In this document: positions 1,509 to 51,905 of the stretch, one piece after another
Layout of the letters: each line of letters opens with the position of its first letter
Position numbering within the stretch: position 1 is the stretch's first letter
Origin: Lepidodermella squamata
Taxonomy: Eukaryota > Animalia > Gastrotricha
Direction: 5' to 3'
Assembly (NCBI GenBank): GCA_047495785.1
Contig: JBLDXI010000013.1
Location: forward strand, 1,612,001 to 1,676,000
Length of the DNA: 64,000 bases
Translations under genes and position numbers: made by a program
The notes under the pieces: model-generated
Seen by the model: only the letters and a program-made list of their open reading frames with translations
Told to the model about the DNA's origin: nothing
Database searches by the model: none

Positions 1509-3454
1509 GTGTGTAAAATGAATAAAAAAACCAAGAGCTTATTGATATTCATACTATTCATAATAACTTCAAAGAATCAACCCATGCTATCTGAGAAAGG
1601 GATTGAAAGAACGGTATCCATTCGTCAAAAAGCTCGCTCTTCTCGCAGTTCTCAAGTTGACTGCACTCAAGGAAATATTTCAGAAACTAATATGACCAAG
1701 CAAGACTTATTTAGCAGCATCGCCAGGCGATTTCCCCACATCCTTCAGCAAATTCTTCTCCTGATCGAGCCGGAGCAAGTTTTCCTCCGGTGCACCTGCG
1801 TTTGCAAGGCTTGGAACTCCGCAATTCGAAGCAGTGGTTTATTTGATTCTCTTTTAGAGAAACAAGCAGGCTTGAGAACTCTTCAGCGAATTTCTACCTC
1901 TCCCCTTTATCCTGACATTCGCTCGGCAATACTCAATGATCCGATATTTCGAAAAGAATTCATAATTAACGCCACTGATAATTTGGTCGATTTGGACCCT
2001 GTAATTCAGGGCGAGTTTTATGTATCAGTACCTCATTTTGTCTCAGAAATCTCTCGAAATCGACACCTGATAACCGATCGTCCATTTAGCGCCGTGAAAT
2101 CAACATCGAACGACCATAACTATTTCTGGCTCATAGACCTACAGCGACATGCGGAATTTCTGAAAATCTTAAAAATGACTCTTAGAATCTCAGCAGATGA
2201 CGTGAAAGAAATCCACGGGCAAAGCTGTGGCCAGCCAGTCATTGTATTGGACGACGATTTTCAGCCCGTTTACGAAACACGGCATCCTCATTGCTTAACA
2301 CATCAGTGGAACGAAGAAGCGAGGCCGTGGACATTTCTTGCAAACGTTTCCGACAATGCACGCTATGTTGCATTGTTGGGCACTCAACAACTTGAAATCC
2401 GAATAATATTCAATACAATTTATGACCGGTGTAAAAACGTGAGAAACAGAGAACCAGCAAACCTATTTGGAATTAAAGCTTTTTGTTGCTTCTAGTTTGC
2501 GACCCTACTAACAGCTTGTCGACTTGGGGATTATGAAATGGCGAAACAGGTCCTGGAAAAAGGAATCAATTCTAAAGACCTAGCCAACACTTCATGCCAT
2601 CATACTAGACAAATGCCTATTCTCGAGGCGATTTTATGGGGCGATCGGAAAATCGACGTGATAAATTTATTGCTGGAGCATGGCGCCAAAATACCACCGT
2701 CGAATATGAAAATCGATCGAGGCGAACTCTTGTCTAGCATGATCATCCAAGCTGCAGTACATGGCAGGTCCATGGGAACAATCCGGATTTTAATCGAGCA
2801 AGACGCTCTACAGGATCAGCTTATTTCACGCGATAAATCTATTCTATCAAAAGCTCTTGCCCAAATTTCTTTCATTATTAGCTCTAGTAGTCAAGATATT
2901 GCTGATTTTCTCATAGGTAAAAAATTTGGCAATTTTAGATTGGATTTAATTTGCTTGATTTAGAACACGGTGCTGATATCAACTTCGTTTCCAAATTTTT
3001 TCAAGACGAAGATGACACTGCGACCATATTAATGAATGCATTTTTCTGGCCCAGCCCTAGGACTGAAACTTTCCGTTTCCTAATCGAACGCGGGATAGAC
3101 GTGAATTTCGTGTCACCCAAGCTCGGAAAATGCGCACTGACATTGGCAATCGATTGCAACTACCTCAACATAGCTCACATGCTCATCAGCATCGGCCGGG
3201 CCGATGTTAACACCAGAACTGGACCGCGGCGAGATTCGACGCCGTTGATAGAGGCTACATTAGCTCGGCGGCCGAAAATGGTCCAGCTGCTGCTGAGTCA
3301 TGGTGCCGATATTTCTTTGACAGATAGAAACGGCCTATCTGCGAAACAGCATGCTAAACTGATCGGAAATCAGGCGTTGATTCAAGCCTTTCGGACGGAC
3401 GATATGCCTTGCTGCTGTAGTACTAACAGGCTAAGTGGACAGCTACATATATGA
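1509..3454 (+). CDS. F-box (N-terminal) + ankyrin-repeat protein, 3 exons (introns 2439-2495, 2917-2963); true ATG uncertain
   Basis: F-box-like segment FPHILQQILLLIEPEQVFLRCTCVCKAWNSAI. Ankyrin repeats LLTACRLGDYEMAKQVLEKG, LLLEHGA, TPLIEATLARRPKMVQLLLSHGADISLTDRNG. GT-AG introns join the three ORFs in frame. Confidence 0.8.
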
Positions 3455-3525: not shown

Positions 3526-5857
3526 TTACGATGCGTTCCTATCGTTCCTAGAAAAGACGTATACTCAGATAAATGTTCGATTTCTTTATAGATGAACTAG
3601 CAACTTACCCGTAAACATCTTCGTCATAGGGCCCTGGCGCTGGTTCTGTCCGATCATCTTCCAGCGGGGGCATTTCTGGTATTTCTGGAGGGTTTTTCTG
3701 AGCCGTCAAACCATCGGTCCGACCCTTTAACTCTTTCATCAATGTAGCAACACTGGCTCGATCAGGCTTTTGCATTGTCGGAGGGCCTTTCATATTGCCG
3801 GTTTTTGAACCTTCATCTATGTCCCTGTAGGAAAACCAATTAAATTTACGATAATTTTCATAAATGTCTTAGCAACTTACCCGTAAACATCTTCGTCATA
3901 GGGCCCTGGCGCTGGTTCTGTCCGATCATCTTCCAGCGGGGGCATTTCTGGTATTTCTGGAGGGTTTTTCTGAGCCGTCGAACCATCGGTCCGACCCTTT
4001 AACTCTTTCATCAATGTAGCAACACTCGCTCGGTCGGGCTTTTGCATTGTCGGCGGACCTTTCATGGTGCCAGTTTTTGAACCTTCACCCGCCAGCTTTA
4101 CAGGTTTTTCGATGTAAACATTTGGCAATTTCCGTTCTGATTGCGCCATCGAAGCCTCGCTCGCCGCTGGCGGATCGATATTAGCATAGCTTGATGCGCC
4201 TGAAGCCTGATTAACATTACTGGTGATTTCCGACCTCGATGATAATCCATCGTCATAGACTTTGATTGTGGCTGAAGGTGAAAGGTAGCTATCGCTTGGA
4301 TGAGTACCCAATTCATTTACATCCAAGTAAATTTCATCTGGGGGTAGAGCACCATTCGCTATCTCTGACGTTTCAACTTGAGACCCATCGACTACTGGGC
4401 TGAGATTCTTCTTATCGCGGATCAAGTGGTAAATAAATACGAAAGCGAATGGTAGTAGAACGATCGCAATGCCAATTGCGACGGCAACAATTAATCCCAC
4501 ATCAACATTATTTTCAAACTCTCCAGCTAGTTGTACTATTAAGGAATGTCAACATACAAAACCATGCATAAATCCAAAAATATCGGGAAAAGCCGTTTAC
4601 CTAAATTGTCGAAATGATCCAACTGCCATTCTCTCCTTTCTGTCCATACGTTGTTTTCAGCTGTGCACAATGCGTATCCTGAACGACTTCTGACAAGTTT
4701 TGTAAGCACCTTGCATAAATCCTGGTCGCCTTCGATGACGACTTGTCCCGACCAGTCATCCGTCCAAGCAATTGTTTCGTCCGCAATAATAAAATTGCGG
4801 TCATCGAAAATTTGCAGCATCAGCCGCAAGTTTTCACTAGGACAAGCCGCGTCCATGCTACACGTAATAGTGCACGAGTCGGTAGTTCCAGCAACTTGAA
4901 ATTAGTTAAGGTATTAATATTTAAGCGAAATTTTCAAAATTGAAACTCATACATGCCATTGTCATTTCTCGAAACTTGTGCGAGAGATCCACAATTATTT
5001 CAGCTTCAGCTGATAGTTGGAGGCCTGGGAGTTCAATACTCGCGGTAATGTTTGCTTGGCAACCATAGCTCGAGGAATTGCGCATTATTGGATAATAACT
5101 GTAAGTCCCACCATTAGGATTATAAGGTTCGTATATGTCTGGCGAGAAGTCCACGCTTGAGAACTCCAAAGTATGTGTTGAGTCTGCAATTTTGCATGTC
5201 CCAGGCAACCCATTCCCATCGTCTCCATGGCCAACTTGAACACGTAACTGTAGGTCTTGATAGCTATCGGAAAACTCAGCAAGATATTTTTGCGTCAGCT
5301 TTCCTTTGATTATTCGTTCCCATTGCAGTGTTCCACCTTTCAGCTCAATTTTAAAAAATTTTGGGAGTACTTTATGACAAAGTTGGAATGAAATATTGGA
5401 ATGAAGTATTGAAGCATAACATACCAGGTATTGCCACTTTAATAGGAGACGGGAAATATATTGTCGTTGGCCGGCAGTAAGCGTAATATTTTGCTGAATT
5501 CGAGTGGTCAACGCTTAGAATTTCGATCTCGGAGTTGCTTTTCCTCCGCACTCGTTGATAGAAATGAGGCGGGGAGGTCCTGAAGGTTCAATTCTAAAAG
5601 TTTTCTCAAGCCCTGAACCTGAAATCTTACCAATAAATGCGACTGAAATCATCGCCGTTTTTGTCTGTTGAGAAAAATGTAAGATCGCTGGTGACACAAT
5701 CGTGATCAATGAAGCGGAACAATATGAAGTCAAGGGTTGAGCCAAAATATTCTAAATACTTTGGCTCTGAAAGCTCATAAGTTATTCGCTGGGCAATGCT
5801 GAAGTCAAGCTTCAACGTAGCGAAAACCATAAGGAACAAGCTTACGAGGTACCTCAT
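3526..5857 (-). CDS. Type-I membrane Ig-like receptor, paralog A (7 exons; cytoplasmic exon tandemly duplicated)
   Basis: Signal peptide MRYLVSLFLMVFATLKLDFSIA; family motifs LFRFIDHDC, SAKYYAYC, VQVGHG, PNGGTYSY, CTITCSMDAACP, ALCTAENN; TM VGLIVAVAIGIAIVLLPFAFVFIY; spliced C-terminus ...DVYGNDRNAS* (stop 3526). Confidence 0.82.
3598..4087 (-). repeat. Direct tandem duplication (~218 bp, offset 272 bp) of a cytoplasmic-tail exon segment plus its splice donor
   Basis: 3598-3815 and 3870-4087 are near-identical and both end in the donor GG|gtaagttgcta. Confidence 0.95.
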
Positions 5858-6075
5858 CTTACGGAATATGAATAACAAAATAATGACACCGGCAGCAAAT
5901 TTTGGCGAGAGGCGTGGCGATTGAAGATACCAGTTCAGCGATAAAAAAATTCTTAGAACTGTGAGATAACACATTCAATGAATTGAGCATTTTCCTGGAA
6001 ATCTTTTATTCTTATTTCATTTTCTGATAAAAATAGGGAAAACATGGACAGAAAAAATCTAAAATCGTGAAATAA

Positions 6076-7924
6076 TCAGAAATAGGCTGCCTTAATTTCG
6101 GGATCATTCTCCCTGGTAGAAGAATTAGCTCGCGATAGAGGTTTTGGACTTTCGATAGAAACTTCGAATACTTGATCATTGACAGGCTTCGTATGAACTT
6201 CAGGCCCCTCTGGCTGTGGCTCTGGTCGGCGATTTACCTTTGTATAAACAACAGCTTCCTCGCCTATCGTTGGCGCCGTAGGGGCTATCAACGGTTGATC
6301 CGGCACCCTAGCGTAAAGTTCGTTCATTCGAATTTCTGTACCATCACTATGGCTTTCTTCGTCAATTGTCGACGGAATCTTTGATCTGCGATCATCGCGC
6401 GGCTGATAATCCGCATCTGGGAAACTTGACGAGGAAGTATCATCAGCATCATCAGCTTGGCCACCATTCTCAGCAGATTCGCTGTCTTGCTTTTTTTCAG
6501 GCAATTTTTGATCTTTCAAAATAGTCATCCGAACGATTATCATTATGACTACAGCGATCAATAATAGCCCTCCGATGACTATCAGAAGAATGACCCACCA
6601 TTCCAACGGCTCGCCTGCTTTCGTCTCAGGATCTGTGGCAGCTGTAGTCGTATCGTCAACCGCTGTCGTATCAGACTCGGAAGAGGTTGTAGTTTCAATT
6701 GTAACTAAAAATCCTAGATTAATAAACTTTAATTTGGCTCGAAATCATTACCTTCTAAAATGTTGACCTCCGAGAATTTTTGAGTCACTTTTGTGCCTCC
6801 AGCATCGTTATCAAGAGAGCAAGTGATGGTTGATAACTGATCGGCTTGTAGTGTAGAGAAATAGTCACAGCGTTGCTTATCAAATTGTTTCTCTGATTCG
6901 TCAGATTTAGCCCACTGAAACGAGTAGGTCCATGAGGTTTTCGCGTCATTAATTTCCATTTTTCTTGATGAAACCGCAGGGCAGCTGGATATGGCTAGAC
7001 AATTAATTGAGCAAGCACCGGTGCTGAATTTAGTGAATAACGCCGAAACTTGTTGAGGTGGATAGACAACTTCCAAATTTACAGTCACATTGTCAGTCGT
7101 ATCAGCCGTTGAGCTTGGCATGAAAGCTGCCGACCAAAATTGAATGTCGCATGTATTCGGATAGTTGGCAATGATGTCCGATAACGACAGACGGAAATCG
7201 TATGAGGTACCATCTGGGAAATTTGCGAATTTGAACGAGGTCGTAGAAGGGTCTCTGGCACTAATTTTACTAATCGTCTCATCGTCGTACGTAAAATGCG
7301 CAGTCTCGCCCTCAAGAAAATATCCATCGCCAACGTGAAATTTTAGGAGCCGAAGTGAATTGACGCTTTGAAAAACAACGCGAAGCTTCAAATTCGATTC
7401 ACTTGCAATATCTTTAGGGTCAAAACTGGTATCATTTTTCGAGGCTGTGTCGGTAATTTCAGCTTTTAAAATTTTCGGCAGTACTTTAATGAGGATTGAC
7501 ACTTCGTTGTCGTAGTTTGTAACCGATTTGCAAATCGCCTGATAAGTTCCAGATTCGGAAAAATTCGCATTCGGAATGAAATATTCGTTCGTATCCGAAT
7601 CAAATTGAAGAACACCATCACTTACATACCTAATAACATTTTCAATATATTCAAAAATTTCAGTCCCACTTATTGTTAAGCTCACCAGTCTTTAAATAAA
7701 ACATTTGAGTAGTCGGGTAGAGGTTTCTGAGTCAGGGCCATTGCCTCGGGTATGGTGCAGTTTGGATCAAATGTGAACCTCAACTCAGTTTCCGAGGCAC
7801 TCGAGTCGTCATTTCGCCGATATTCTATTGTATCATCCGGCCAGAGTTTGGCTGAGAATGTTTTTCCTTGAGCGAATTCGACAAAAGAGCCGAGAAATAT
7901 TGAAAAATACAAAAATTTTGCCAT
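6076..7924 (-). CDS. Type-I membrane Ig-like receptor, paralog B (3 exons)
   Basis: Signal peptide; LRFTFDPNC, NFSESGTYQAIC, LKFHVGDG, FPDGTSYDF, CSINCLAISSCP, ITCSLDNDAG; S/T-rich stalk; TM WWVILLIVIGGLLLIAVVIMIIV; tail with LYARV and VVYTKV. Confidence 0.88.
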
Positions 7925-8161
7925 CTTCGCCCTAGATATCAGTGTAGTGCGTGTTGCTATAAATTATTTACGCCTTCCTAATAGTCCTATGTCATGAGCT
8001 TCGTGTTCCTTATCTCGATTTAAACTTGCTTTTAGGTACGTTGCGATATTAACGTGAGCATTGACCAAATAATTAATCATATTACGAGAAAAGCTCCGCC
8101 CTTTTTTTCTGAATCAACCAAAAAATAATCATTTTATTTTTCGAAAAAATCACAAAAAACA

Positions 8162-9721
8162 TTAAACAAGAACTTCTGTCCATTTTGTTGATCTTCTGGC
8201 TGCATAATATTGGTTCGTCTCGCCGCCATTAGGACTAGTAGTTTGCTGTAAGTTCGGTTCGGCGATCATGAACGGCTGAAACTGACTAAAGCGCTGCGTA
8301 GAAGCATCGAAAGAGGGCTGAAAAACTTCTGGTTCAGGGGCTTCGTTCTTGCTACTGTCTTCTCCCTTACTATTGCCCCTGTGAGTAAGGATGTAAATCG
8401 ATGTACCAATCGTTGCGATGAAGAAGACACCAGCTACGACAATAGTAGCTATTTGCCATTCTGGAAAACCGCTATCAGTCTCAGTTTTACTGGTTTTAGG
8501 CTTGTATTCACCCACAATTTCCAACTCATCAGCCGTCAGTTTCACGGTACTTTTCCCGACTGAGTTACTCATTTCACATTGAAAAGTTGAAACTCGTGTC
8601 GCTCCAGGTTTCGGCTTTATGTTCATCTGTAAGCACATGTTTTCAGACAAGAGACGGTCTTGTCCAGAAAATAAGACGATAGTATCCCTACGAGCGTCAT
8701 AGATGCGATAAGTCGCGTTATTGAAATCATTTTCTGCGTAAGGACAACTTGAGGCGGCTAAACAGCTGATTGAGCAAGTGCTGTTTTCAAAGTTCACGAC
8801 CCGTATCGTAAGAGATTGAGGCCGATATTTAGTTACCAGGTTGACTGTAACGCTATCTTTTGTGTTGAGCTGGTCGCTCGGTATCCAAGTCTCTCCCCGA
8901 AGATCGAACTCACACTTGTTCGGATTCGACTTGACCAGCTCCGATAGCGAAAAATGAAATGAGTAAAAGGTGCCATCTGGAAAATTCGCAATATTGAGTC
9001 GTGAGGAAGTTTTGGGAGTTGGAGTTGAGCCGGAGTTTGTGAGTTGGAAAACCCCGATTTCGCCCTCCTTGTTGTAGTAGCCCAGTCCAACATAAAAATT
9101 GAGCGCAATAGTGGTTGTTTTGGCTTGTTCGAAATTTGCCGTCAACTCGTATTTCGACTGTGTTGTTCCAGGTAGGATAAACGAATTGGGTAGCACTTTC
9201 AACGTAGGATCCAGGTTCACTTGTAAAATCTGAGGTCTGACTATAACCAATAATTAAAATAGGTAAAAAATGGTTGCAAATGGTTAATATTATTGCAACC
9301 TTGAATGAGGATTTCTTGAGGTTGATAAGCATCTAAGAGACACAGAGCGGTGTAATTGCCAGATTCAGAGAAGTTTGCTTGATTTATGTAATACTGCTGA
9401 CTCGGAGAATCGTAATATAAATTGCCGCGACTAACTGACCTGAGACAAAACTTTCGAATCATAATAAAAATCATAAAAATCCTACCTTTCCACAACTTCC
9501 TTTGAAGTAAATGAAGATTGGCGAATTAACAAGTTGTTCGAGTCCGGGCAAGTCGGAGTGAATAAAAATCGCAGTTGTGGATACTGCTCGGTTTTCGGGA
9601 TATACCATATCGATTTCGCTTCAACGCCTTGATCCCACAATTTGACAGAAAACGTTGACTGGGCATCGATGAATTCAAAGCAAGCCGATATTAAAATGGT
9701 AGATACGAGATTTAATTTCAT
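8162..9721 (-). CDS. Type-I membrane Ig-like receptor, paralog C (3 exons)
   Basis: Signal peptide; LRFLFTPTC, NFSESGNYTALC, LNFYVGLG, FPDGTFYSF, CSISCLAASSCP, FQCEMSNSVG; TM WQIATIVVAGVFFIATIGTSIYIL; C-terminus TEVLV*. Confidence 0.88.
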
Positions 9722-9978
9722 TTACCGAAATGTTTAATAAATAATAATTATCTGCTACTTTGTGTTATGTATTTTCGATATACATCGCCTACTTGAATAC
9801 GCTGGTTCGCGATAGCATTACGCGATAAGCATGTCGACTTTTTCTTATCAATATCACGCCCTTATAGTATAAATCACTGTGTTACTAGGAATCGCCCACA
9901 ATTATACACGAAAATTGAACAACTGTTTTATTCGAAACATAAGTATTGTGTTAGCTTAGCATCGATATGGCAATGAAA

Positions 9979-11996
9979 TCAAACTCTAGCCTCGATAAAT
10001 GAAGTAGGTGATGGTGGGACGAAGCCCCCGTTGTTGTAGCTGGGTGGCCGGAATGAAGGTTCGACCGAGGCCGAGCGCGGTGTAACCGGTATAGCCCTTA
10101 ATAACGGCACGGGGTCTGTCGGCAATGGGGGTGGCGCCGATGACCGTTTTTCCAACAGAGAATCGTGATGCTTTCTCACGTTGTAGACATGTCCATCATC
10201 TGCAGAAATCTCCTTATTGAAGCTACTATTCCAGGTATTGTCCTTACTATTAGCCGGTTTGATGGGAATGAATAAATTGTTAGGCTGAGCATAAGAATGA
10301 TGGTCGTTATGTAGTGAAAAATTGGTCGCAGTAGCTACAGTCCTTGGACTGCCATCTTCCGACATGTTATCTGGCTTGGGTCGACGGAAAAAAATGTACC
10401 AAATCAGGATACCGACGAGAAGCAAGAAAAGTATGATTCCGAAAGCAAGTATGCCGCCAGTTTTCCAGTCTAACTTTTGCTCGCTAGTTAGTCCACCAGA
10501 GATGCTCACCTTAGCGTCATTATCATTTTGATTCGTGGAATCTTTCACCGCCCGCCATGACTTATGGTTCCAAACACACGCCAATTTTCTCTCGTCTTTC
10601 GCCAGGTCGTTAAGCAATGGGCACATGGTTGAATCGAAATTTTTATAAGCTTGCCGAACTTCCTCTCGCTGGTCCATTTCCAACGTGATCGACTGATATT
10701 GGAATTCGGAACGGCGCATGATTAGAGTGGCCGATTCGGGTCGTTCAGGGCAACTTATTGAGTACCCGCATTTGAAAGAGCAAGATCCATCTGGTTTGTT
10801 GATTATTAATCTCGAAACGTGTTGAGGCCTGTAATTCAATTTCAAGGCGAACTTATTCTCCAGTAATGTTCCCTTTCGATCAATGGGATGATACATCATG
10901 GTTTTGAACTCAATTGAGCAGTTCAAAGGCAGCTTTTGAACAATTGTATCCAGTGAGATGGCGTACGAATATGTCGTGCCATTCACCATGTTTCTCATCT
11001 TGAATGTTTCGATTTTGGTCGGTTTATACTTCGGCTCCCCGTCCATCACTGGTTTTACCGACTCCGCCATAAGTTTAGACAAAACATTCTGATCCACCTC
11101 AAATTTTGCACCTTCGCCAGCTGCGTTGTAGAATCCATTTCCGACATGGAATCTTAACAGCTGAACTCTGGAGTTTAATTGGTCAAAATTCAGATAAATA
11201 TTTGAAACCGTCGAATGACTCATTGGCTTCATCAGATTAAGGCTAAGGGCAAGAGAGCTTCGTAAATTGTCGAAATTAACGAAGCGTTTCTTGAAAGCTT
11301 CAATAATATTCTCCAGCTTTTCTGTTGAATTTGCCGTCAATAAAGACTGGGTCAGGTGACGAACGTCGAAAGTTTCGGTATCCTCGACAAGATCTCGTGG
11401 GCTCAGCCTCGGAAACCTCTTAACGGGTTCGGAAGCTACGTCGACCATTAAGATTGCGGGGTTAACTATTGGCACAGAAATTCGGTGTTTTCGAAGGTTT
11501 AATTGAAAAAAAGTCATGCCTTTGATGTAAACAGGATACGGTTTTCCTTCGCGGTAAGCTGGCATAGCCGGTGTTCTTATGCACTGAGCTGTGTAGTTAC
11601 CGGCGTGGGCGAAACTGGCTATCAAAAAAACGAATTGCCCTGTTCCTTCTTCGAACTTTAACTCGTCATCTTTCATCGACCTGAAAGGTTCAGAAAAATG
11701 AATTTGACATAAATAAAGTAAATAAAGTACCATTCCTTTGACTTTCCACCGATGAATGGAGTTTGAATTAGACGAAGCTGGTGAGGATCGCATTGGGGCT
11801 TGAACGTAAAGCGAAGTTGATTTGGCGCAGAGTCACCATAGCTGATGGAATTTGTGGTGAAGTTTGCCTCAAAATAAGGCTCTTTGTTAGCGCAAGACGG
11901 ATCTTCAGAATTAGCATCATGGGCGAATAAGTTAGCCGTGACCAGCAGAAACGTGACCAGCAATATTGGCGAGTTGGTCCTCATCACAGGCTGCAT
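9979..11996 (-). CDS. Type-I membrane Ig-like receptor, paralog D (2-3 exons; insertion in domain 2)
   Basis: Signal peptide; LRFTFKPQC, SFAHAGNYTAQC, LRFHVGNG, VNGTTYSY, CSFKCGYSISCP, LACVWN; TM GILAFGIILFLLLVGILIWYIFF; tail with PPPLP, PPSY and terminal IEARV*. Confidence 0.86.
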
Positions 11997-12422
11997 AGCA
12001 TTTACATTACTTATTCTTTAAGCCCAGCCTTGTCGTTGGAATATGATAAAGCCAGGTGTTCAAATTCTTTCAATTTGAGCATCTGCTGCAGTTTTATGGC
12101 TCAATAAATCTCGTCGGAAATGTAAGCGCTCCCAGACATGATTAGAGCCTTATAAGCGAGTTGGAATTGGAATTCCATTTCAATGAAATCTAGCATAAAA
12201 AATATGCGTAAAAAAGACTTCAAAACGTCTGAGTTTTATTTCACCTGGCATATGATCGAATGATGCACAACGTAAAATTATAGCACTAAATTATTGCCGT
12301 CAAAGAATAAAATTGAAAAAACGCTGCTCACGAAAAATGACGTCGTAATAAATTCATAATAATAATATTTACAAATTTCGAACAAAAACATCAGCAGGTA
12401 GAAGAATTTTTCATGAGTTTTA

Positions 12423-14264
12423 CTAGACGATTGCCTCGGCTCTGAACGATCGCTGTTGAGCCGGAGTGCGCGAAAACGCTTGGTTGTCGTAGAATCCTGA
12501 ATCGACGGGTGCGGCGCCGGCAGCTATCGGTTGCCGAGACCGCGGCGTGTTGTCAAAAGTTACTGTTCGATACTCGGACTAAAAATGAAAAAATATTCAT
12601 TTTTCAGGAAAAATTGTCTATTTTAGCACTTACAGCGAGTGGCTGATTAGTTGGATAAGTTGTATCATGGTCGCCAATGTATCCGCGGCCCGGGTCGTAA
12701 TAGCTGGAACCCGCCTGCGACATAGGTCGCTGCTGATAAGTTTCAACCATGCGCTGATCTTGCCGAGGAATATAATCTTGCTCAGCGCCTTGCTGGGCCG
12801 GTAAAACTTGCGGAAAAGACGACGCTGCGTAAGGCCCGTTGTCGCCATACACACCGTTTTTCGGCGGCGGGGCGTAGTTGACCTGTCTCACCGTTTCCAA
12901 TTCCTGAGTTGATGGTTTTTGATCCTCTTTATCCTCTCGCTTTTTCCTCGTTGCGACAATTACAATCACTCCGATAACAATGATAAGGAAGAAAACGCTC
13001 GCCAAAACGATGAGTAAAATCTGCCACCAGTCAAGCCAAAGCACGCCGCTGGTAACAGTGAGACCAGCTAGATCAACAACTTGGTCCATAGAAAAATACT
13101 GAATCTTAGTCCCGACCGAATTCGTAACTTCGCAAACCGCGAGTCCAGCCTTATTCTTCGCCATTGTAATCATCAATTGGCAAGTTTCGTAGGTGATCCC
13201 ACTAACAGTTACACTATTCTTGCGGGATGTCGTTAAAGTCTCTTCGCCCAGTGATTTGTTCTGGGCGTCCAGCAGGGTTAGCTTCAACACAACATCTCGA
13301 TAAGGACACGCTGAGTTGACCTCGCACGTGACGGCGCACTTTCCAGCTGAACTAGACGCTGTAACTTTCAACTCTTGGGCTTTATAGTTCAAGTCCAACA
13401 AAACATTCGCCTCTTGCCATAAATCTGTCGCTCCTTCAATCGCCGCTCGTGCTGTTAAATTTGCGACGCATTTAGGTTCAGTTGCCTGGCTCCACTTGGC
13501 CGCGTCCAAATTATAAGCGTAGACAAGTCCGTTCGGATAGGTTGGCTCGCGCGTAATCACGACTCTCGCCGAAATCGTGTCGAGTGTAACAAAACTAGTA
13601 TCGCCTCGTAGGGTTAAATCGCCGGTTTTACCTGCCGCACTTTTTCCGAGACCGACATCGAACAATAGGTTGGTAATGCTAGAATCGTCGAAGAAGGCGT
13701 CGAACTGGTAAAAGCTATGGTAGCCATCGGATGAATTCGAAGAAGCTTTCAACGTCGAACCTTTAACCCGCACGTTTAAAATCTGTGCCGCGACTTGAAA
13801 AAAGTAAAATTTTAATGTTCAAATATGTTGCTATTTGAATAAAAATTACCAGGTACTGCAAGCTTGTATTCCTCGTAAACATAGTTCGGTGACGCGAGGC
13901 AATTAACGACGAATCCACCAGCCGCTGAGTAATCAATTGCATCAATTTTTATAGCTGATGCATTGGGCCGGGTGTAATACAACGCCTGGTTAGCACTTGT
14001 GCTTTGCCTGTGATGAAATTTTATAACGGTGATTTTTGACTCACTCGAAAATGTTTACCAAAACTTTTGTCCACTGCTGCTTGTTGAGAACATGACTAGA
14101 TCATTAGATAGAGAGCATGGAGGGTCGAGTGTGAAAACGAGTTCCGATTTGGCATCGTATCGCAAAAATGTTGGCGTTAAGGTGGCTACTAACCGCTGAC
14201 AGGTGACACAAGGGATAGTCCCTAGAATGAAGATGACGATAGCCACCAACTGCCCGCGGACCAT
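12423..14264 (-). CDS. Type-I membrane Ig-like receptor, paralog E (4 exons)
   Basis: Signal peptide MVRGQLVAIVIFILGTIPCVTC; LVFTLDPPC, DYSAAGGFVVNC, LLFDVGLG, YPNGLVYAY, CAVTCEVNSACP, AVCEVTNSVG; TM WWQILLIVLASVFFLIIVIGVIVIV. The last exon (12423-12578, not in ORF track) encodes SEYRTV...GFYDNQAF...RAEAIV*. Confidence 0.86.
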
Positions 14265-22583: not shown

Positions 22584-25500
22584 TTACAGGTCATTGTTGT
22601 TCAAAGTGACGTAGGCGCCAGGTCGGGCCGCTTCTGACTGGTTGGTCTCTAGAGACCGTGATGATCCCAAATGAGCGAAAGACGAGCTCAGCGAGGTTGC
22701 TCTGCCGCTATCGAGAGCGCCTGGCGTTGATGAGCCGTCACCGTCGTGGATGGGATTCGAGAAACCGAAACCGTCGTCGGCTGAGATGATGTTTTTCATC
22801 TGAACAATAGGGCCGCGCGCGTCGCCGGCAGGCTCCTCTTGGAGGGGGTGCATCTGGAAGTCACCGTGAACGCCTCGCCGAGACCGCCACCGCCATACGA
22901 AAAATCCAAGTCCGAGGAGTAGGAGGACGCCAAATATGCACGATATTACGATAACAGCGATGACGAGAGACTGGGATTGAAAGCCGAGCGAGGTTTGCAC
23001 TAACGTGTCACCTGGCTTTACCAGGGCCTGGGTGTCACCGCTCGACTCGTTGCAGAAAGGACCAGAGAAACCAGGCAGGCACTTGCAGACGTACATCTCC
23101 GGGTCGAAACTGTACTCGCAGATGCCGCGACCAGGCGGGCAGGATCTCGCGCACGAGATAGGGTGAGCGGGCGCGGGGATGACGGGCGCACCGCAAGTTG
23201 TTGTCGATCCGTCAGCGAAGTCTGACAGATCCGGGCAAGCGCACTGAGGAGCCCCGCGCTCGCCCAAGATACACAAGTGCGAACAGCCCATTTTCGGACA
23301 GACCAGTGGCCAGGTTGACTGAAGACCAGCCTTCATCGGGTGGTAGACACGTAGCGATTTAGCGGCGAATAGAGTCGCCGTCTGATTAACAGCGACCAAT
23401 CGACCGAATTTGTCCACCTTGAAAAGTTGTCCAATCGTCGCTTCATGGTACAGCGATTGAGTGAAAACACCATAGACGTGCGTTTCAAAAACGTCAAAAG
23501 CCCGGCTGACTCGAGCGTAGAGGCCACCAGGGAACGGTGATCGAGACGGCGAAACTGTAATCGTCGTGACGCCAGTACCATCAAAGTTCGACAAATAAAT
23601 TTGGCGATTGTCCGAGAAATACAAGCGACCAGCAGCTAGATAGTCAACCACGATAGTGTTGATTGGGCTCTGAAAAAGACAAAAACCATTATAACGAAAA
23701 ACTTCTGCGCAGAATAATAACTCACGTTGTTGATTCCGGTGAAGATGGACTGATTTTTCTTGCCATCCATGTTCGCCATAATAAGGTGGACTTCAGTGCT
23801 CCATGGCGATCGGGCGAATTGAACAGAGTAGTAGAGCTTGCCATTCAACGGATTAACCGCCATAGCCGTGATTTTACCGGTGCTGTTGCGAATCAACGTC
23901 TTCTGGTACCGGCCATCATCTCGGGCGACGATAATTCGCGAAACCGCAGCTTGACCGTCAACATTCGTATCGGCAATGTACAAATTACTGCCGATGAAAT
24001 CGATTGACAGGTCAACAACATCAGCCAGGCCTTTAACTGGCATTGATAGAGACCCGGGCGATAAAATGCCTTGTTGCGGCATGGCGGTTCGCCTCAATCG
24101 ACGAGACACACCCTCGGCATAGATAATGGTTCCATCTCTGAAATCCACCTCAACAGCCGCAAAACTTTCATCAGCCTGAGCCTGCGCGACTGACGTGTAC
24201 ACAGTCTTAGCAGTTCGTTTGCCCCACAGACGGATGGAATCAGCTGAGATAAAGATCAAGGTAGTGTCTGATGTGTCGTTAGCTCGGCAGATTGTCATCG
24301 AAGGATTTGAAGAAGTCGAAGGCAATTGCTCGCGAATGAAGCCGTCCGCGCATGGGCAGCGGTAAGTGCCCTTGTCATTATCGCAGGTCTGAGAGCAGTT
24401 ATTCGCAAGGGGTGACAAACATTCGTTGACATCAACACAGAAACGAAGATCGCTCTTTGAAACGACAAAGCCTGGATTACAGCCGCAGTAATAGCCACCC
24501 ACAACTGGCCGGCCGTTGGAAATCGAGGTGACGTTGATGCATTTCTGTTGGCAACCGCCGTTTCCAACAGCGCAACTCGATCCGTCTCGGAAACACCCGA
24601 TTTCATCGGAAATTTCGCACTGGCCGACATGTGTCGCATTCCTGAGCTGGCCGAAAGTTGGCGTCCAAATACCCTCAGGGCAACAGTCAGGCACGCCGTC
24701 GCACAGCTTCGTTTCAGGTACGCATCTGAAGTTTGATCGGCACTTGATTGCGTTGGTAGGGCACGCGCCTTGTTCAAGTTGCAGCGTCATCGCAAGCTGA
24801 CAAGCGGCCGGTGACTCGTCCGAAGTGTCGTTGATACTCACCGGGCCCTGAATGCTACACTGCGAGCGTTGATCGCACAAATCGACGGCTCGAATGCATT
24901 TCTTGGAGGTCTCGCACCGCCAGTAGCCCTGGGTGATGTTACACGGGCGCCTGTTGCACGCGTCCGCAACTTCATCAGAACTGTCGCGGCAATCGTTATC
25001 GCCATCGCAGACGTAGGCGAGAGGGATGCATCGTTTGTTCGCGCATTGGAACTGCGTGGGCGAGCAAGGTACTTCAGGGCAGTTCATTTCGTCCGAGTTG
25101 TCCGGGCAATCAGGAGTACGATCGCACCGGCGGTAGTTGGGAATGCATTTTTCTGAAAAAAATTCCGATAAAATCATCAATAAATTTTGCATTTGAAAAA
25201 TTACCTGTCGAGTTGCAGTGGAATCGAAGAGGTCCACAGGTGATGCCATTGACGCAACTTTGTTCGTCACTGTTATCACCGCAGTCATCGTCACCATCGC
25301 ATCGCCAAACATTCGAAATGCAGCGGCCCGAAGTCTTGCACCTGAATTCGTCTTCAGTACACGGCCTCGCCTGTTTCGCGCAGTACGTCCTGTTTTCATC
25401 GGATCCATCGCCGCAATCATCGACCGTATCGCAGGTCTGATACTGCTGGATGCATCGGCCGTTGCCGCAGCTAAACTCGCCGACACTGCACGCCTGGGTT

Positions 25501-28500
25501 CTGCAGACCGCGGGGCTTTCATCCGACCGATCACGGCAGTCGTCGATACCGTCGCAAATAGCAAATCGTTGAATGCATCGGTAGTTGGACGCGCATTTGA
25601 ACATGAGCGGCGAGCACTTTTGCGTAGCAGCGCACGTCGCAGGTTCGTCAGAGTTGTCCTTGCAGTCGTCATCAAAGTCGCAGACCCAAGATTGCGGGAT
25701 GCAGTTGCCGTTGCCGCACTTGAAATACTCGGCCGGGCAAGTCCGGTTCAAGCACTGGGCATTTAGCGGGAACTCATCACTGCCGTCTCGGCAATCACGA
25801 TTGACGTTGCATTGCTGCCACATCGGGATACATTGGCCGGATCGACAGCGGTACTCACGAGATCCGCAAATAGTCGCATTGCAATTAACCTCATCACTGC
25901 CGTCTCGGCATTCGGGGACACCGTTGCAAAGTTGGCTCGGATAGACGCAAGTTCCGTCGTTGTTAACACACTGGAACAGACCTCGAGCGCAGGTGCGTCG
26001 CGGGCATGTCGGCGGTTCGTCACTTCCATCACGGCAATCGCGCTCCCCATCGCAGAACCAAGTTCGCGGAATGCACCTCTCATCAGACGAGCCACACTTG
26101 AATTGGGTGTTTGTACACCTAGCGATACATTTCTTGCCGTTACCTTCGAGTTGGAAGTCGACCGGGCACGCGCATTGAGCTTGACCACTCGGCGTTTGAA
26201 GGCACAAATGAGAGCATCCACCGTTATTAACATGGCATGGGTGCGCCTTGAAGCGTTGCGCGGCAGGGTGGACAACCACCATTGAATAAGGTGGATGCAC
26301 TGTTTCGTTGACGATCGACATCCGGTCAGTTGCGTTGAACTGCTCGGCTACCTCGATAGTGCGTCTCGTGAAGTCGGTCCAATACAGGTTTCCATCGAAA
26401 ACAGCCATCGATCTGACGTAGGTAACTTCGCGAAGCGGTAGGACTGTTTTGATGAATTTACCGTCTAGGTCCGTCATTTTCACCCAACCGTAGTAGTTGT
26501 CCGACCAGTAAAGCCAGCCACCGTAAGAATCAATGGCTAACGATCCCGGTTCATCCATTTCACCACGGTCTTTCGAGACAATGACGCGCCAGTCCGAACC
26601 GTCCATTCCCACTTTCGCGAGGAAAACAGGATGGCTCAGTTCGATGTAGTAGACATAGCCGCGCCACGAGTCGCAAACAATGAAAGACGGCGCGCGCTCA
26701 CGTCGCACGCCGTTATCATGAACTATCGATTCGTAAGATCCGTTCAGTTCCGAAACGAAAACGTCAATATTCGTGTAATACAGCTTGCGGCCGATCCAGT
26801 CGACACAGAAGTGCGAATCGGCTGAAAAGTGGGTGATCTTCGCAACTGTATTACGATTCTGACCAGATTTTAAGTCCATCGTCAACAAACCGGCACCTTC
26901 CTGAATGTAGTACAGCTTATTCTCACGATAATCGTAGTCAAGCGCGCGAATAACTCCGATATTTCTCGCCAGCATCGTGTAATTCTCGAGGTTCAAAGTC
27001 ATCATTCGAATGTAGAAAACATTGGCGAAAAGAAGGTAAGGCTGGGTATCGAGTGGTCGCTTGCACTTGCTAGGGTCTGATGGTACAGCAGTGTAAGGTG
27101 CGTCACAGGAGCATTTGTAGGTGCTTCCCGGTAGACTGGTACAGACTTGCTGGCAAACACCAGGTGATTCAAGACACTGATTGACCGGAACGCATTTTGT
27201 TGGCACTTGCCCAGCTGTAACGTTAGTGTCCAAGCGGAAACCGGCACGGCAAGAGCAGGCGTAACCAAGTTTAAGCTCGGTGCAAAGCTGCTCACACGGG
27301 CGGCTGTCACAATCTGTAAAGTTGCACTTCATCTGCCGGCCACTCGTGATATCTTGGTAGCCTTCATCAGATCCATCGGCGCAATCGGGTTTGTGATCGC
27401 ACACCTAAAAAATTGGGAACAAAAATTAGAACAAAATTTAAAAAAGTCCGCCTTAATACAATTTTTTTTAGCAAAACTCGAAAAAACTAACCTGGGCTAA
27501 CGAGACGCAAACAGAGTCGTTACGGCACATGAATTGTGAAGAGGTGCACGTTGGCTTGACTATGACAGTAACATTGGAAATGACCGGCGCACAATTTGCC
27601 TCGTCGGACCAATCACCACAGTCATCACGTCCATTGCAAGTCAGAGTTTTAGCAACACATTTAGCATTGAAACAACGGAACTTGGTTGGATCCCGGGCAC
27701 AGCCGCAGTTTGCATCATTTTCATCGTCACCCTGTGGGCAGTCGTGATCACCGTCGCAGACGAATGAAGATGGGATGCATTCGGTGCTGCTGTTGCATTG
27801 GAACATGCCGACAGCGCATGATCGCCGCGCAGCGCCTGCAGTACAATTCGCCTCGTCTTCGCATTTCGTGCAATCGCAATCGCCGTCGCAGGTGTAAGTG
27901 GCCGGGATGCAAGGTCCGCGGGCAATACCAGGCGCACGGTTAGAAACACAGTCGAATTCGGTGGTTCGGTTGCAAGACAAGCCAGAGCACATGGTAGAAT
28001 CTTCATCAGACCTATCACCGCAATCAGGATCGCCGTCGCATAGCCACCGCCTAGTAATGCAGCGACCGTCACTTCGGCACTGAAATTGCTCTGTCGTACA
28101 GCGTTGCGTGGTATTTCTGCCGAAGCATGACGGCTGAGTTTCATCGTCACCATCCGGGCAATCGGCCTCGCCGTCGCAAACCCAATGTGGCGGCACGCAA
28201 CGGCCGCTAGAGCAGCGGAACATGCCGAACGCGCATTGAGTGTTCGAACAAGCCTGGCGGGTTTCGTCAGAGCCGTCGTGGCAGTCGTCCTCGCCGTCGC
28301 ACACCCAGCGTTGATCGATGCAAATATTCGTGGTCGCGCATTTGAATTCATCGCTTCGGCATTGTCGATCAGGGCAGCCCTTTTCGTCAGTCGCATTGCC
28401 ATCACGGCAATCGTCTCGGCCGTCACATCGCAGCGATGCAGCAATACAGCGCCCGTTCAAACAGGCGATAGTTGCATTCGGGCACGACTCGTAGATACAA

Positions 28501-31500
28501 CCGATTTCATCGGAATTATCGCGGCAGTCGTTATCGTGATCGCAGCGGTAAGACGGAGAAATGCAACGACCGTTGTTGCATTTGAAACGATCGGCATCGC
28601 ACTGTTTGTTTTTACAGAAGATCGGGTCTTCGTCCGTGCCATCCGGGCAGTCGTTGTCGCCATCGCAAGCCCATTTAAGGAGGATGCAATTACCATTACC
28701 GCACGTGAAATGATCAGCCTCGTTGCAAGTCGCGTTAACTTTAACGCAAGAGCGACGACCGTTCGCAGCGAAAAGACCAGCCGGGCATGAACAGAACGCT
28801 TTGTTGCCGATAGTTTTCGTGCAATTGAAGGGGCAACCGCCGTTATTGACCCGGCATGGATCGGCTTCACATTGCCGGGAGATATAACTCTGAGACTTGA
28901 CCGCCAGCGAAATGTAAATTGGAGGGTCCAGCTGACCAGGCAGCACGTTTTCCATGCCACTCAAGGTATCAAGGCTGATGCGATAGACACCTCGCAGCTG
29001 GTAATCAGACCAGTACAGGAAGTTGTCGTAAAGAGCGAGTGAGTAGGGCATGGCGGCTGAACCGACTGCGACCGCGGTTTTCGACCCATCGAGGGTAGCA
29101 CTCCAGATCTTGCCAGAACCAACGTCAGCCCAATAAACCACGTCATTGACATCATCGACAACGATACCAAGAGGCAACGTGGTCGAACCTTCAGGCGAAA
29201 TGAGTTGACGATCTGCGCCCGTTCTCAAGACCCGGTAAACCCCGATAACACCCGGGCCGCCCCACTGGGTCCAATACAAAACTCCGTAGCAGGAATGGAC
29301 TGCAATGTGCTTCGGATTCACAGCGGATGTCAACTCGGTAATAGCCCATGTCGAGGTGTCGCTTGATGACAAATTGACGTAAGCCAACATATTTCGATTA
29401 GATAATGTTAGATAGAGAATGTGGTTGTTCCAATCGTAGGCCATTCCGCCGATTTGGACACGCCCAGTTCCGAGATTTCGAAGTGGAACCTCACCAGCTG
29501 AAGAACCAGAAATGTAACCGCGGGTATATTTCAAACCAGTCGAATCGCCGTAGAAAATACGGTCCCCAGATGGGTCCATCCAAACTGCAGAGATGTCGGT
29601 CATGTTGACCAACGATGCGATCGGACGTTCGTTCCATTGAGTTGGTGGTAAACTGGCCGAGTTAATAGCGGTTTTCGACGCCCAGACCATGAATGGCTGC
29701 GCCGGCAAAGTGCATTGGTTCGGATTAGAGGGGTTAACAGTGCCATAAGCGCAAGCGCATCGGAACTGGTTGTCTGGCAAATTGAAGCACAGCTGCTCAC
29801 AGGAGGCCGTGGCACAAGGATTTCCGCTCGAAATTTTCATACTAGAAACAAAAAATGGTTGGATAAGAAGATATTCTTCAATAAAATTAGTACCTCGAGT
29901 CGTAATAGTAAAGATCGCCCGGTCCCTCAGGGTAATAATTAAGAACCAAGACACGGGCATTGCTGTCGCGACTGTAAATGGTGTTATCATGAGTGTCCGA
30001 AAAATAAATCATGTTGTTATAGTAGGCGATGCCAGCAACTCCCTCAACGCTATCTTGAAGAATCTGCGAAGAAGTGTGCGAGCCGTTAGACGGATTCAAC
30101 GGCAGTTTTGTAATGATTCCCAGGTCAGCATCGGTAATATACAGGTCGCCAGTGGTTGGATCAACGGTTAACGAAGTCGGTTGTCGGAACAAATCTTTTG
30201 AGCCAGGGACTTCAATCGCATTCTGGCCGTCGAGATCGGACACCATAATAGTTGGCTGCTGACCATTCAACGCGAAAAACAGTCGTTTTCGCATAAGATC
30301 AACCGCGATCGAATACGGCGAGCTGTCCGTGCTTTTGTAGATGACTTTTCGGTAGGTCGTTCCGAGTTTGAATGCTTCAATTACCGATGCTTCGAACTGC
30401 TCTTGGCCGACATACAACATGCCGGTATCAGATTCAAAGGCAAGGGATAGCACAGTACCGAGACCGGAGTCGGTAACGATTTTGTGAGTCCCAACACCGA
30501 AACCGACACTCTTGATGATGTTGTGGGTTGAGCCTTCCTTTTCGGCCCAGTAAAACACGCGGTTGACCGGGTCGAAAGTCATCGCGACAATAGTGTTCGA
30601 ACCGACAGTAATCGGTGCGCTCGAGACAACAGGGCCGCCGGTCGAGGTTGACTGAGTTCCCAGGGTGAAAATCGAGTTTCCGATAACGCCGATGAGATAC
30701 GAGCCAAAAGGTGAGCAAGTCGATTGATCCGCGTTCAGGCGGTAACCCATTGCACAGGCGCATTGACGGGTGTTTCCAGTCTTCGGCAAGCAAATTTGTT
30801 CGCAGCCGTCGTATAATCCAGCCTAAAAACCATTTTTTCAAGTTTTTTCATCATTCATTTTAGTTTTAATATTTACCATGCAGCCGGTGACGAGTCCTCT
30901 GTTATCATTAGGCGAGTCGATAAAAACATCGAGGGCCTTCGGCACGACGTCCTCGGAGGTAATGTTGTACGCAAAAGTAGCTGAGGCGCCATCGCTCATC
31001 AAGGCGACAATGCGACGGGCCGTATTGTTGTACGCGTAGATAATAGACGGCGAAAATGGATCCAAGGTCAACGGGAAGACGCGGACGTCGTACTCTCGAA
31101 CTGAGGCCATAACCGTGCTGACCGGCGTAGTCACACGAACGAGCTTTTCACGGCCGGGAGCAGTGAACCACAGCTGCTGGAGAGTTGAAGACGAAAAATC
31201 GCAACTGAACGACGAATACATCATCTAAAAGATATTTTAAAAAAAAATTATTTGACCTATAAGAAACTGGTATTTTCAACCTTTAACGTGACAACAATCG
31301 CAGCATTTTCGCCAGCCATTGAAGATCGAACGATCTTATTGACAAAATAAGCACCGCCGTGATCAATCCAAAACAGATGGAAATTCGGCAAGTCCAGGCA
31401 CATTCCAACAGGTTTGTATGGACTGGCGTCATCCGATGGTTTATGGCTCAATAACGTGGTCGACATGGATGGCACCGTGTTATTTTTCGGGGCGATGCGG

Positions 31501-37500: not shown

Positions 37501-37649
37501 AACTGGGTTGGCAGGCAAATATTGCCACCCGAGTCGGACGAAACCCCGCTTAAACTGATTGCGAGGAGGAGTAAAACGAGGTTGCGAGAGTAAGTAATAA
37601 AAAGAGACAGCTGTGACCGCCTTAACAGTAGAAAACTTTCATCGTGCAT
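22584..37649 (-). CDS. Giant LDL-receptor-related protein, megalin/LRP2-like (roughly 4,700 aa, about a dozen short introns)
   Basis: Signal peptide; several clusters of LDLa repeats (CDGxxDCxDGSDE); EGF/cbEGF modules; YWTD-type beta-propellers (LYWSD, VYWTD, IFFSDWG); single TM LVIAVIVISCIFGVLLLLGLGFFVW; tail with FSNPIH. LRP2 versus LRP1 orthology not resolved. Confidence 0.93.
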
Positions 37650-50061: not shown

Positions 50062-51905
50062 TCAGCTGTCAGAATTGTCGATACTGTAGGGTGAAGCTGT
50101 CGAAACTGAGCTGGAAGACGTTGATGATACTGAATCGACTTTTGTTTTTCGTAGAACTGCCTCCGGGTCTTTGGTTAGTAAAGAAGCGGCTGGATCGTCA
50201 CTCGACCTTAGCCGCTCCTCTTCTTGCTGCCACTCAAAGAATCGAGTCTTCCGCACTCGGAAAAACTCGCGACCAGTAGCGGCCACAAAGGCAGCTGTAC
50301 CCGCGAAACATACAGCCCCGAAGAGGTACGACCAGACAGAGTCGAGCGTGTCCAAGAAAGCTGAGTAAAATGATTTTAGAAAATTCCTCAAATTATAAAT
50401 GGGGTTTACTTGGCAAGGCATAGCCGAATACTTGAATTGCTCCTTGCACGGCCAGAAACCAACCGAAGCAGGAAGAGCTGTTCTTTTCACCGTAAAGATC
50501 GGTAACCAGCACAGACCGCATCGTAATCAGAGGTGCTGAAAAACAGATCAGTCAATTATAGTCAGATTTGATTTGTTCAAATTTTATAACACCCCATCAC
50601 CCAATTTCAATCACTAATTGGGAAGGTTCAGTAAATGGTCGTGACCACATTCACAGAAATGAACTCAGAATCATCCCAAATTAAGGCTTTCCCCCCATTA
50701 CCTTCAAGCACATGGGTTTAAAAAGAACGACCGTGCTTTACCTATGAAGAAGCCATAAACACAGACAAAACTGACGAAAGCAGCATCACCATACGTCATG
50801 ACGTGAGGAAAAACAAGAAGGGCGACTACGAAATGAAACGAAAATTAAATAATTCGAAAAAAATGTTCTTAAAAATTACGAGAGGATACGACGTGTCCAA
50901 TTATGTAGATCCAGAAAGATGTAAAGGCTTTGAGGTTTTGGTGATTGCGGCCGTAGTCACCAAGCCGCCCGGAAACCAACCGCCCCAAAAGGTTAGCACA
51001 ACCCTTTAAGAAATTTCACAGTAAATCGGAAATAAGTATCAAAATGTTCGAACCCAGATCAAGATAATTTTCGATTGAACGCTAGGGCTGACGCCGTATT
51101 GAGGGAGTGTCGATTGCGAAGGAATCAGAATAACTGGAACGTAATAGCCAGCCATCGAAAGGGCAGCTGCGCCAAGCACGCAAAGGAAAGAACATTGCCC
51201 GAAATGCGAGACGTCGAAGTAGCGCGCGAAGAATGATTCACTTTTAGCGTCGTTTTTCTCCGATTGCGGCGGCCTTGGAATCAATTTTTCCCGAACGAAG
51301 TCTAATTCGCTCTTTGAAGGGAAGCTGAGGGCTGCCAGAACGCCATTTAGTGAAAAAATTGCGAAGGCCAGCAGAGTTCCTCGCCATCCGATATTTTCGA
51401 TCAGGAAATGAATGATGAAGCCGAAAAATATAGCGCCGGCCGCCGAGCCGCAAGTTGTAATGCCAATAGCTAGCGATTTAGTTTTGTGATCGAAATAAGT
51501 TGGAATCGTGTTGATAGATGGGCCATAAAGCATCGCGAAAGCGACTCCCTCCAAAACGCCTATAGTGGCGAAATCGAACCAAAATCCGGCGTGGAAGAAC
51601 GTTTCATTCATCCAGCATAAAAGAAATCCGAGCGATGACACAAGCGAAGCTGCTATTGTAACGCTGCGGCTGCCGAAATGTTCAACCAAGGCGATGCCGA
51701 TTGGCGCTAGGCCGTTGTATAGCGCCGGAACAATGCCGCCGACTAGAGATATCACGCTTGGATGTACCAAGGGATAGCTCAGCTGAATCTGGATGCTGAG
51801 AATGCCGAAAATGAAGCAGAACCCATCGACGACTAGGTTAAGGTAGAATGTCGAAGCTAATATAACCCATCGCCTGGTAGGATAAAACTGGCTGATTGCT
51901 GACAT
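50062..51905 (-). CDS. MFS transporter, monocarboxylate transporter (SLC16)-like, 5 exons
   Basis: RWVILASTFYLNLVVDG...FGI, LVEHFGSRSV, YGPS..IPTYF...LAIGITTCGSAAG, LIENIGWRGTL, GRLVSGRLGD, VLVTDLYG; multiple TM helices. Confidence 0.9.

Follow-up and report, generated by a model that had tools for sequence, protein, structure and literature searches.

What kind of cell-surface protein is encoded by five tandem, strongly diverged genes of a gastrotrich, and what might it do there? The question is raised by positions 3526-14264 of a 64,000-nucleotide stretch of Lepidodermella squamata DNA (contig JBLDXI010000013.1, positions 1,612,001 to 1,676,000; hereafter the window), where five paralogues, g1 to g5, lie head-to-tail on the minus strand. 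An earlier note, made from the letters alone, had taken them for a lineage-specific receptor family, with emphasis on immunity or self-recognition and with homophilic adhesion as an alternative. Here we combine gene models, public assemblies, database searches, structure prediction and phylogeny to characterize these genes. g1-g5 are a real, expressed family that has no earlier description and is absent from Pfam. As to function, we give about even chances to the reading that they form a lineage-restricted, nectin-like adhesion or recognition family whose cytoplasmic tails are anchored to PDZ proteins, a function that is putative.

The open reading frame (ORF) listing and a three-frame translation give proteins of 484-661 amino acids (aa), with exons joined across very short introns of 46-65 nucleotides (nt); the outer limits of the array, 3526 and 14264, agree with those of the earlier note. 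All five proteins combine a hydrophobic signal core at the N-terminus, an ectodomain of three predicted domains (D1, membrane-distal, to D3), a single transmembrane (TM) segment (21 residues, mean Kyte-Doolittle value 2.2-3.5) and a cytoplasmic tail of 75-262 residues; the ectodomains carry 2-5 N-x-S/T sites each. All coordinates of the family are on the minus strand. g1 (14264-14059, 14007-13850, 13793-12634 and 12578-12423; 4 exons, 559 aa) has its TM segment at 13020-12958 and ends in EAIV (12437-12426); compared with the earlier model it has an extra intron (12633-12579, 55 nt) and a last exon that reaches 12423. g2 (11996-11731, 11680-11520 and 11465-9979; 637 aa) has its TM segment at 10452-10390, ends in EARV (9993-9982) and carries an insertion of ~90 aa where D2 begins. 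The splicing of g1 and g2 was read from the sequence. The candidate intron 2 of g2 (11519-11466, 54 nt, GC..AG) is in frame and free of stop codons, such that its retention would add 18 residues; we infer it because its position matches exactly that of the D1/D2 intron in g1, g3 and g5. g3 (9721-9486, 9439-9300 and 9240-8162; 484 aa; TM segment 8452-8390; C-terminus EVLV, 8176-8165) and g4 (7924-7686, 7629-6752 and 6704-6076; 581 aa; TM segment 6594-6532; C-terminus AAYF) each have two introns that are confirmed by complementary DNA (cDNA), g4 being without the D1/D2 intron. g5 (5857-5631, 5579-5425, 5369-4953, 4894-4601, 4535-3881, 3824-3609 and 3547-3526; 7 predicted exons, 661 aa) has its TM segment at 4494-4432 and a tail with 10 Tyr that ends in NDRNAS at 3526. 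A tblastn search of the remaining 53 kb of the 64 kb window found no sixth copy.

The paralogous ectodomains share only 17-33% identity, and eight Cys are aligned and invariant in all five as well as in four relatives from two other species; at such low identity, this framework goes far beyond what chance would produce. The gene models bear out what the earlier note had described: five minus-strand genes in head-to-tail order, each with a signal peptide, one TM segment and a tail; eight Cys kept despite the divergence of the rest; and the motifs L-x-F-x-F-x-P-x-C, [ND]-[FY]-S-x-[SA]-G-x-Y-x-A-x-C, V-G-x-G, P-[ND]-G-x-x-Y, C-x3-C-x5-CP and C-x3-N. Its statement that a canonical C-strand Trp is lacking needs a qualification, in that four of the five genes have a D1 Trp at the exon 1/2 junction, which is probably not the canonical C-strand position.

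Two public runs contain the locus, and their contigs were placed on 6050-12000: X1, a cDNA assembly that gives evidence of transcription, and X2, assembled from DNA of a strain (or sibling species) ~96% identical to the window. Contigs of X1 skip the g3 introns at 9485-9440 (46 nt) and 9299-9241 (59 nt) and the g4 introns at 7685-7630 (56 nt) and 6751-6705 (47 nt), all of them GT..AG on the minus strand. The 5' end of the g4 mRNA lies at ~7949, 25 nt upstream of the ATG, where one X1 contig carries the SMART template-switch oligo; cDNA contigs of X1 contain the 5' untranslated region (5'UTR) of g2 to 12035 or beyond, and 61% of the words sampled from the g5 stretch were found in X1. A loose end of X1 at 11931 was considered as a spliced leader or alternative exon and rejected; it is the g2 5'UTR (12035-12006), turned round by an artefact of the cDNA or of the assembly. 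Over 6050-12000, X1 also shows many joints between opposite strands, ~100 nt apart within g2 and g4, whose appearance suggests an artefact of library or assembly, by hairpins or strand switching, rather than biology.

Sequence searches place the family outside everything that has a name. A Pfam scan of all exons and 22 family pieces returned no family match, the best immunoglobulin (Ig) scores (Ig_2, expectation value (E) 0.063; I-set, E 0.16) coming from one member each and lying far below the cut-offs. An exhaustive HMMER profile search of 1.84 billion representative proteins found only four true relatives, P0001 (E 2e-37), P0002 (3e-22), P0003 (6e-16) and P0005 (6e-5), all nameless and all from metagenome or Logan contigs; a bacterial Ig-repeat protein in the same output was dismissed as noise. 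The proposal of a lineage-specific family outside the named ones is supported by both results. The g3 ectodomain and the family alignment, run against a word index of 5.8 billion proteins, brought up nothing and missed even P0001, apparently a limit of the word prefilter. The profile search of the PDB brought up no nectin, its sole and non-significant match being the F-G strands of CD22 d3 (E 0.085), and the feature search of the ESM Atlas gave only weak Ig leads (scores 0.80-0.85). The relatives belong to two species. Relative A has a g1 orthologue (P0001/P0006; loci L001-L003) that is 33-38% identical to g1, a g4-type gene (P0002) and a third member at a separate locus (L004), and from species B there is a single member, on a short contig (L006). 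The architecture of g1-g5 recurs in each of the four relatives, as do all eight Cys.

Although sequence searches fail to classify the family, its fold can be approached through structure prediction. An AlphaFold2 model of g3 D2-D3, made from six sequences, has two all-beta domains (predicted local distance difference test score, pLDDT, 69.7), and a model of D1-D3 of P0002, a single ORF, made from a 22-row alignment of family pieces, shows three sandwiches, which span roughly residues 22-101, 105-233 and 236-324 (pLDDT 79.2; predicted template modelling score, pTM, 0.71). The output of the fold searches consists almost exclusively of Ig and FN3 proteins. When the P0002 model was compared with the PDB by Foldseek, Necl-4 came first (E 3.9e-10), followed by NEGR1, nectin-1, SIRPa, RAGE, IgLON5 and nectin-3, with E-values from 4e-10 to 2e-9 across these top matches. 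VIA-align, which is independent of Foldseek and covered 48,161 chains, ranked nectin-1 (3alp) first (Z 9.5, 264 residues aligned), ahead of nectin-3 (8.9), MAG (8.9), PVR (8.7) and SYG-2 and Necl-4 (8.4). After re-ranking, the Foldseek top 1000 was led by four nectin-1 entries (Z 9.1-9.8), then nectin-3, MAG, IL-23R and Necl-5, and in the ESM Atlas the same model matched nectin-2, VCAM-1, Kirre, lachesin and CADM1 at TM scores of 0.45-0.52. By these model comparisons the lead of nectins over generic three-Ig proteins is real but small.

The individual domains differ in how closely they follow the Ig pattern. In D1, two Cys are separated by 49-57 residues, and the motif [ND]-[FY]-S-x-[SA]-G-x-Y-x-x-C is F-strand-like. 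D2 (~130 aa) has one conserved Cys and no intradomain disulfide; taken alone from the g3 model, it is best matched by the macroglobulin (MG) domains of complement C3/C4/C5, RbmA, integrin thigh domains and transglutaminase barrels (Z 8.4-9.1, root-mean-square deviation (rmsd) 2.7-2.8 A over about 101 residues), matches that point to a generic E-set sandwich rather than a canonical C2 Ig domain. D3 matches FN3 and Ig domains alike and has five Cys in the pattern C-x3-C...C-P...C...C-x-x-x-N-x-x-G, the last part of which is the I-set F-G signature. With six conserved Cys, one in D2 and five in D3, the sequences suggest a single interdomain disulfide between D2 and D3. The Cys pairs of D1 and D3, the F-strand motif of D1, the C-x-x-x-N-x-x-G of D3 and the all-beta models are the marks of the Ig superfamily (IgSF) at the level of the fold, and an Ig-like fold, as had been foreseen for the ectodomains, is well supported by the predicted models with their three sandwiches and Ig/FN3 matches. 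Assignment to any named family is not supported.

The cytoplasmic tails supply a second line of evidence. They had been described as unrelated, which needs a correction: although mostly unalignable among g1-g5, at the very end those of g1 (EAIV), g2 (IEARV) and g3 (TEVLV) share an E-[AV]-x-V motif. The three paralogues come from both clades of the phylogeny described below, and the motif recurs as EAYV in the g1 orthologue of relative A. The chance of such a motif at a given C-terminus is about 0.4% (Glu and Val each being near 6-7%). The last exon of g1 (EYRTVTFDNTPRSRQP...FRAEAIV) has its counterpart in the same exon of the orthologue (DYRTVAFDNTPRSRQP...RSEAYV). Longer stretches are also kept between orthologues: the tails of g1 and P0001 share RP-[MV]-SQAGSSYY-[DE]-P and [DE]-YRTV-x-FDNTPRSRQP, and those of g4 and P0002 share E-[VI]-H-x-[RK]-P-V-[DN]-D-Q-V-F and both end in Phe (AAYF in g4; ETNF, after a predicted last intron, in P0002). 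Among signalling motifs, neither immunoreceptor tyrosine-based activation motifs (ITAM) nor switch motifs (ITSM) were found in the tails of g1-g5. Single strings like the inhibitory motif (ITIM) occur in g1 (SEYRTV), g4 (VVYTKV) and g5 (SSYANI) and are not kept in orthologues, where SEYRTV becomes NDYRTV and VVYTKV becomes HIYSVP. As far as seen, the predicted TM segments of the five are free of Lys and Arg. The tail of g5 contains a tandem duplication (3585..4087, minus strand) of two direct 231-nt copies, 94% identical and 272 nt apart, which doubles a module of ~72 aa (GSKTG-x-MKGPPTMQKPDRASVATLMKELKGRTDG...PGPYDEDVYG); it takes in the end of an exon with its splice donor, has made an extra tail exon and is judged to be recent.

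In the mechanism that we propose, five old tandem paralogues would encode type I membrane glycoproteins in which three beta-sandwiches form a rod-shaped ectodomain: an Ig-like D1 that has a B-F type disulfide, a larger D2 of Ig-like or E-set type, and an I-set-like D3. D1, the membrane-distal domain, is where a partner on another cell would bind, the tail would dock to PDZ scaffolds of the afadin/Canoe or Par-3 type via E-x-x-V, and conserved, paralogue-specific Tyr motifs may supply further docking sites. The layout of three Ig-like domains, a TM segment and an E-x-x-V end is that of nectins and Echinoid, and from it we infer a role in cell-surface adhesion or recognition; layout and tail motif together suggest both adhesion and PDZ binding. 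Echinoid (EIIV) and nectin-1 (EWYV) carry class II PDZ ligands that are bound by Canoe/afadin (PMC2712996). Several observations weigh against this reading. Homology to nectins or to any Ig model of Pfam is not seen at the sequence level. The E-x-x-V end is lacking from g4 (AAYF) and g5 (RNAS), and no extra exon encoding one turned up in a search downstream of g4, of g5 or of the L004 gene; where the motif is present, three of four examples have Ala at -2, which is weak for class II ligands. D2 alone resembles MG domains, RbmA and transglutaminase barrels more than it does nectin D2. Finally, the nectin Z-score of 9.8 compares with 7.5-8.5 for generic three-Ig proteins at an rmsd of about 7 A, a value that is expected for multi-domain rods.

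How old the family is, and under what constraint it evolves, bears on the choice between this and other readings. In relative A, an LDL (low-density lipoprotein)-receptor-related gene, a lipoyl synthase and a prefoldin lie upstream of P0001/P0006, which is directly followed by the g4-type P0002. In the window, a giant gene resembling LRP1/LRP2 (megalin), with many LDL-receptor class A/B repeats and EGF modules, lies upstream of g1 (22584-37649, minus strand; GC content ~50%, above that of its surroundings). Synteny is thus conserved, an LRP-like gene standing upstream of the family in both. Behind P0002, L003 has four Temptin_C (PF24784) genes on both strands (7301-10937), where the window has three more family paralogues. 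An IQ-TREE phylogeny of the ectodomain alignment (360 columns) resolved clade A, made up of g1, g5 and the g1-like genes of relative A (support 100/99), and clade B, with g2, g3, g4 and P0002 (95/94), leaving the L004 and L006 genes outside both. Terminal branches are short for g1 (0.56 substitutions per site) and g4 (0.87), the slowly evolving members of clades A and B, respectively, and very long for g2, g3 and g5 (2.1-3.8), g5 being the most divergent copy. Two clades with one orthologue each in relative A, and the short branches of g1 and g4 against the long ones of the others, indicate that the ancestral locus had at least two genes. The paralogues are old, the two clades predating the split from relative A, and the lineage of the window probably gained three quickly diverging copies, unless relative A lost copies instead. 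The P0002 gene (L003 4541-6010) is intronless across D1-D3, whereas g4 keeps the intron inside D1 and has lost the D1/D2 intron, which shows that intron loss differs between lineages in the family.

Differences between strains were classified in a small sample. It is non-random and comprises 40 of the 226 differences between X2 and the window, 38 of them coding; none falls in D1. In g3 there are 8 synonymous and 2 non-synonymous differences (7:0 in the ectodomain alone), and in g4 the ratio of synonymous to non-synonymous differences is 4:2 in D3, 4:1 in stalk and TM segment, and 6:8 in the tail. The ectodomains of g3 and g4 together have 11 synonymous against 2 non-synonymous differences, which speaks against strong diversifying selection on D2-D3, D1 being outside the sample.

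These results bear most directly on the immune or self-recognition role on which the earlier note had laid its emphasis, that is, on immune, allorecognition or paired receptors forming a fast-diversifying tandem IgSF array that signals via Tyr motifs. Such a role would suit the unequal copy number (five in the window versus two at the syntenic locus of relative A), the very long branches of g2, g3 and g5, the Tyr-rich tails of g1 and g5 and the ITIM-like string that occurs once each in g1, g4 and g5; moreover PVR, a relative of nectins, acts as an immune ligand and carries an ITIM (PMC7286890). Yet the duplications are ancient, and orthologues with conserved tail motifs have been retained in synteny. 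There is no ITAM or ITSM, the ITIM-like strings have not lasted between orthologues, the ectodomain differences in the strain sample, none of them in D1, are mostly synonymous, and the eight Cys and many framework residues are conserved across three species. The emphasis on immunity is therefore not upheld, and we consider this explanation quite unlikely. The alternative that the same note had named, homophilic adhesion, fits better, given a nectin-like shape and a C-terminal E-x-x-V resembling a class II PDZ ligand in three of the five paralogues.

If the likeness to nectins is granted, it might reflect homology rather than a convergent layout, the genes being true but extremely diverged orthologues of nectins or Necls. 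Domain count and order, TM segment and tail are the same, and nectins are the top whole-ectodomain match in two independent searches. Nectins have the C-terminal afadin-binding consensus E/A-x-Y-V, with which the E-x-Y-V end of the g1 orthologue of relative A agrees; the EWYV of nectin-1 is an example (PMC2712996). Against this stand the lack of detectable sequence similarity in Pfam, the PDB profile search and 1.84 billion proteins, and a D2 that is without the canonical Ig disulfide and is more MG/E-set-like. D3, in addition, has three extra Cys that, to our knowledge, nectins are without, and hydrophobic ends of the PDZ-ligand type are common to many unrelated IgSF adhesion molecules, which leaves such orthology improbable in our view. 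Still less do we favour receptors for soluble ligands, akin to cytokine receptors, in which D2-D3 would act as a two-sandwich ligand module and the tail Tyr would signal. D2-D3 does align with IL-23R, the IL-27/gp130 complex and G-CSFR at Z 7.9-8.8, and Tyr motifs of the tails are conserved, but these scores are tied with those of generic tandem sandwiches, and reading by eye found no WSxWS-like motif in D3 and no membrane-proximal, proline-rich Box1. An Ig-like D1 and a PDZ-type end suit adhesion molecules better, and this explanation is very unlikely to be right.

Returning to a nectin-like adhesion or recognition family, we can ask what it would mean. Almost nothing is known of the adhesion molecules of small invertebrates, which are poorly sampled, and nectin-type ones are regarded as essentially vertebrate; nectins have been described as prevalent in vertebrates (PMC7286890). 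A full-text search on rotifer IgSF adhesion molecules found nothing relevant. A three-Ig receptor family that is conserved and expressed, with eight Cys in a new framework and ends resembling PDZ ligands, would add lineage-specific cell-contact molecules and would offer a handle on the recruitment of afadin-type scaffolds beyond vertebrates and flies. The furthest-reaching version, which we think unlikely, is a protostome counterpart of the nectin-afadin module, namely a three-Ig family with an E-x-[YIL]-V PDZ ligand for afadin/Canoe in a microscopic animal of spiralian type. Were it true, the family would be either a very diverged nectin homologue, which would move the origin of nectins back to the bilaterian ancestor, or a separate re-invention whose new Cys framework includes a disulfide between D2 and D3. 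We rate the importance of the locus as moderate because it provides no evidence for a new immune or allorecognition system; it does hold a new protein family that is well defined, was missed by Pfam and has a testable function.

Three further genes of the window were noted. An ankyrin-repeat ORF (2951-3454, plus strand) is convergent with the 3' end of g5. A major facilitator superfamily (MFS) transporter (51039-51905, minus strand) has as its only close database relative a nameless metagenomic protein of 52% identity, and a Sushi-repeat protein with a weak match to a hormone-receptor domain (55646-57154, minus strand) is possibly the N-terminus of a secretin-type G-protein-coupled receptor.

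Comparison with known systems places the family among several well-studied groups without merging it into any. The Alr proteins of Hydractinia are tandemly encoded single-pass proteins with non-canonical Ig-like domains, and in array, topology and domain type the present family is like them; it is unlike them in that the profile search of 1.84 billion proteins yielded no homologue of Alr type, in that no sign of hyper-polymorphism shows in the strain sample, which includes no D1 difference, and in that its orthologues are conserved across species. IgLON/NEGR1, the N-terminal parts of MAG and CD22, RAGE and SIRPa share the three-Ig rod (Foldseek E 1e-9 to 1e-8, Z about 8-9), whereas they are anchored by glycosylphosphatidylinositol (GPI), longer or equipped with other tails, and the likeness in sequence is limited to the generic F-strand motif. 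Echinoid is, like the family, a protostome IgSF adhesion molecule, and its EIIV belongs to the same motif class as EAIV and EVLV; it differs in having seven Ig domains plus FN3 (PMC7286890) and was absent from the matches of the searches made. Nectins are defined as IgV-IgC-IgC-TM proteins with a PDZ motif, Necls having an added band-4.1 motif and PVR an ITIM instead (PMC7286890). The family departs from nectins in having no V-set or C2-set Pfam match, a short D1 with 49-57 residues between its two Cys, an MG/E-set-like D2 without an internal disulfide, five Cys in D3 and two of five paralogues without E-x-x-V. With nectins, Necls and PVR it nevertheless has in common a signal peptide, three Ig-like domains (predicted in the family), one TM segment and a hydrophobic C-terminal PDZ ligand, putative in the family, and it is nectins that give the best structural matches to the whole ectodomain of the family model.

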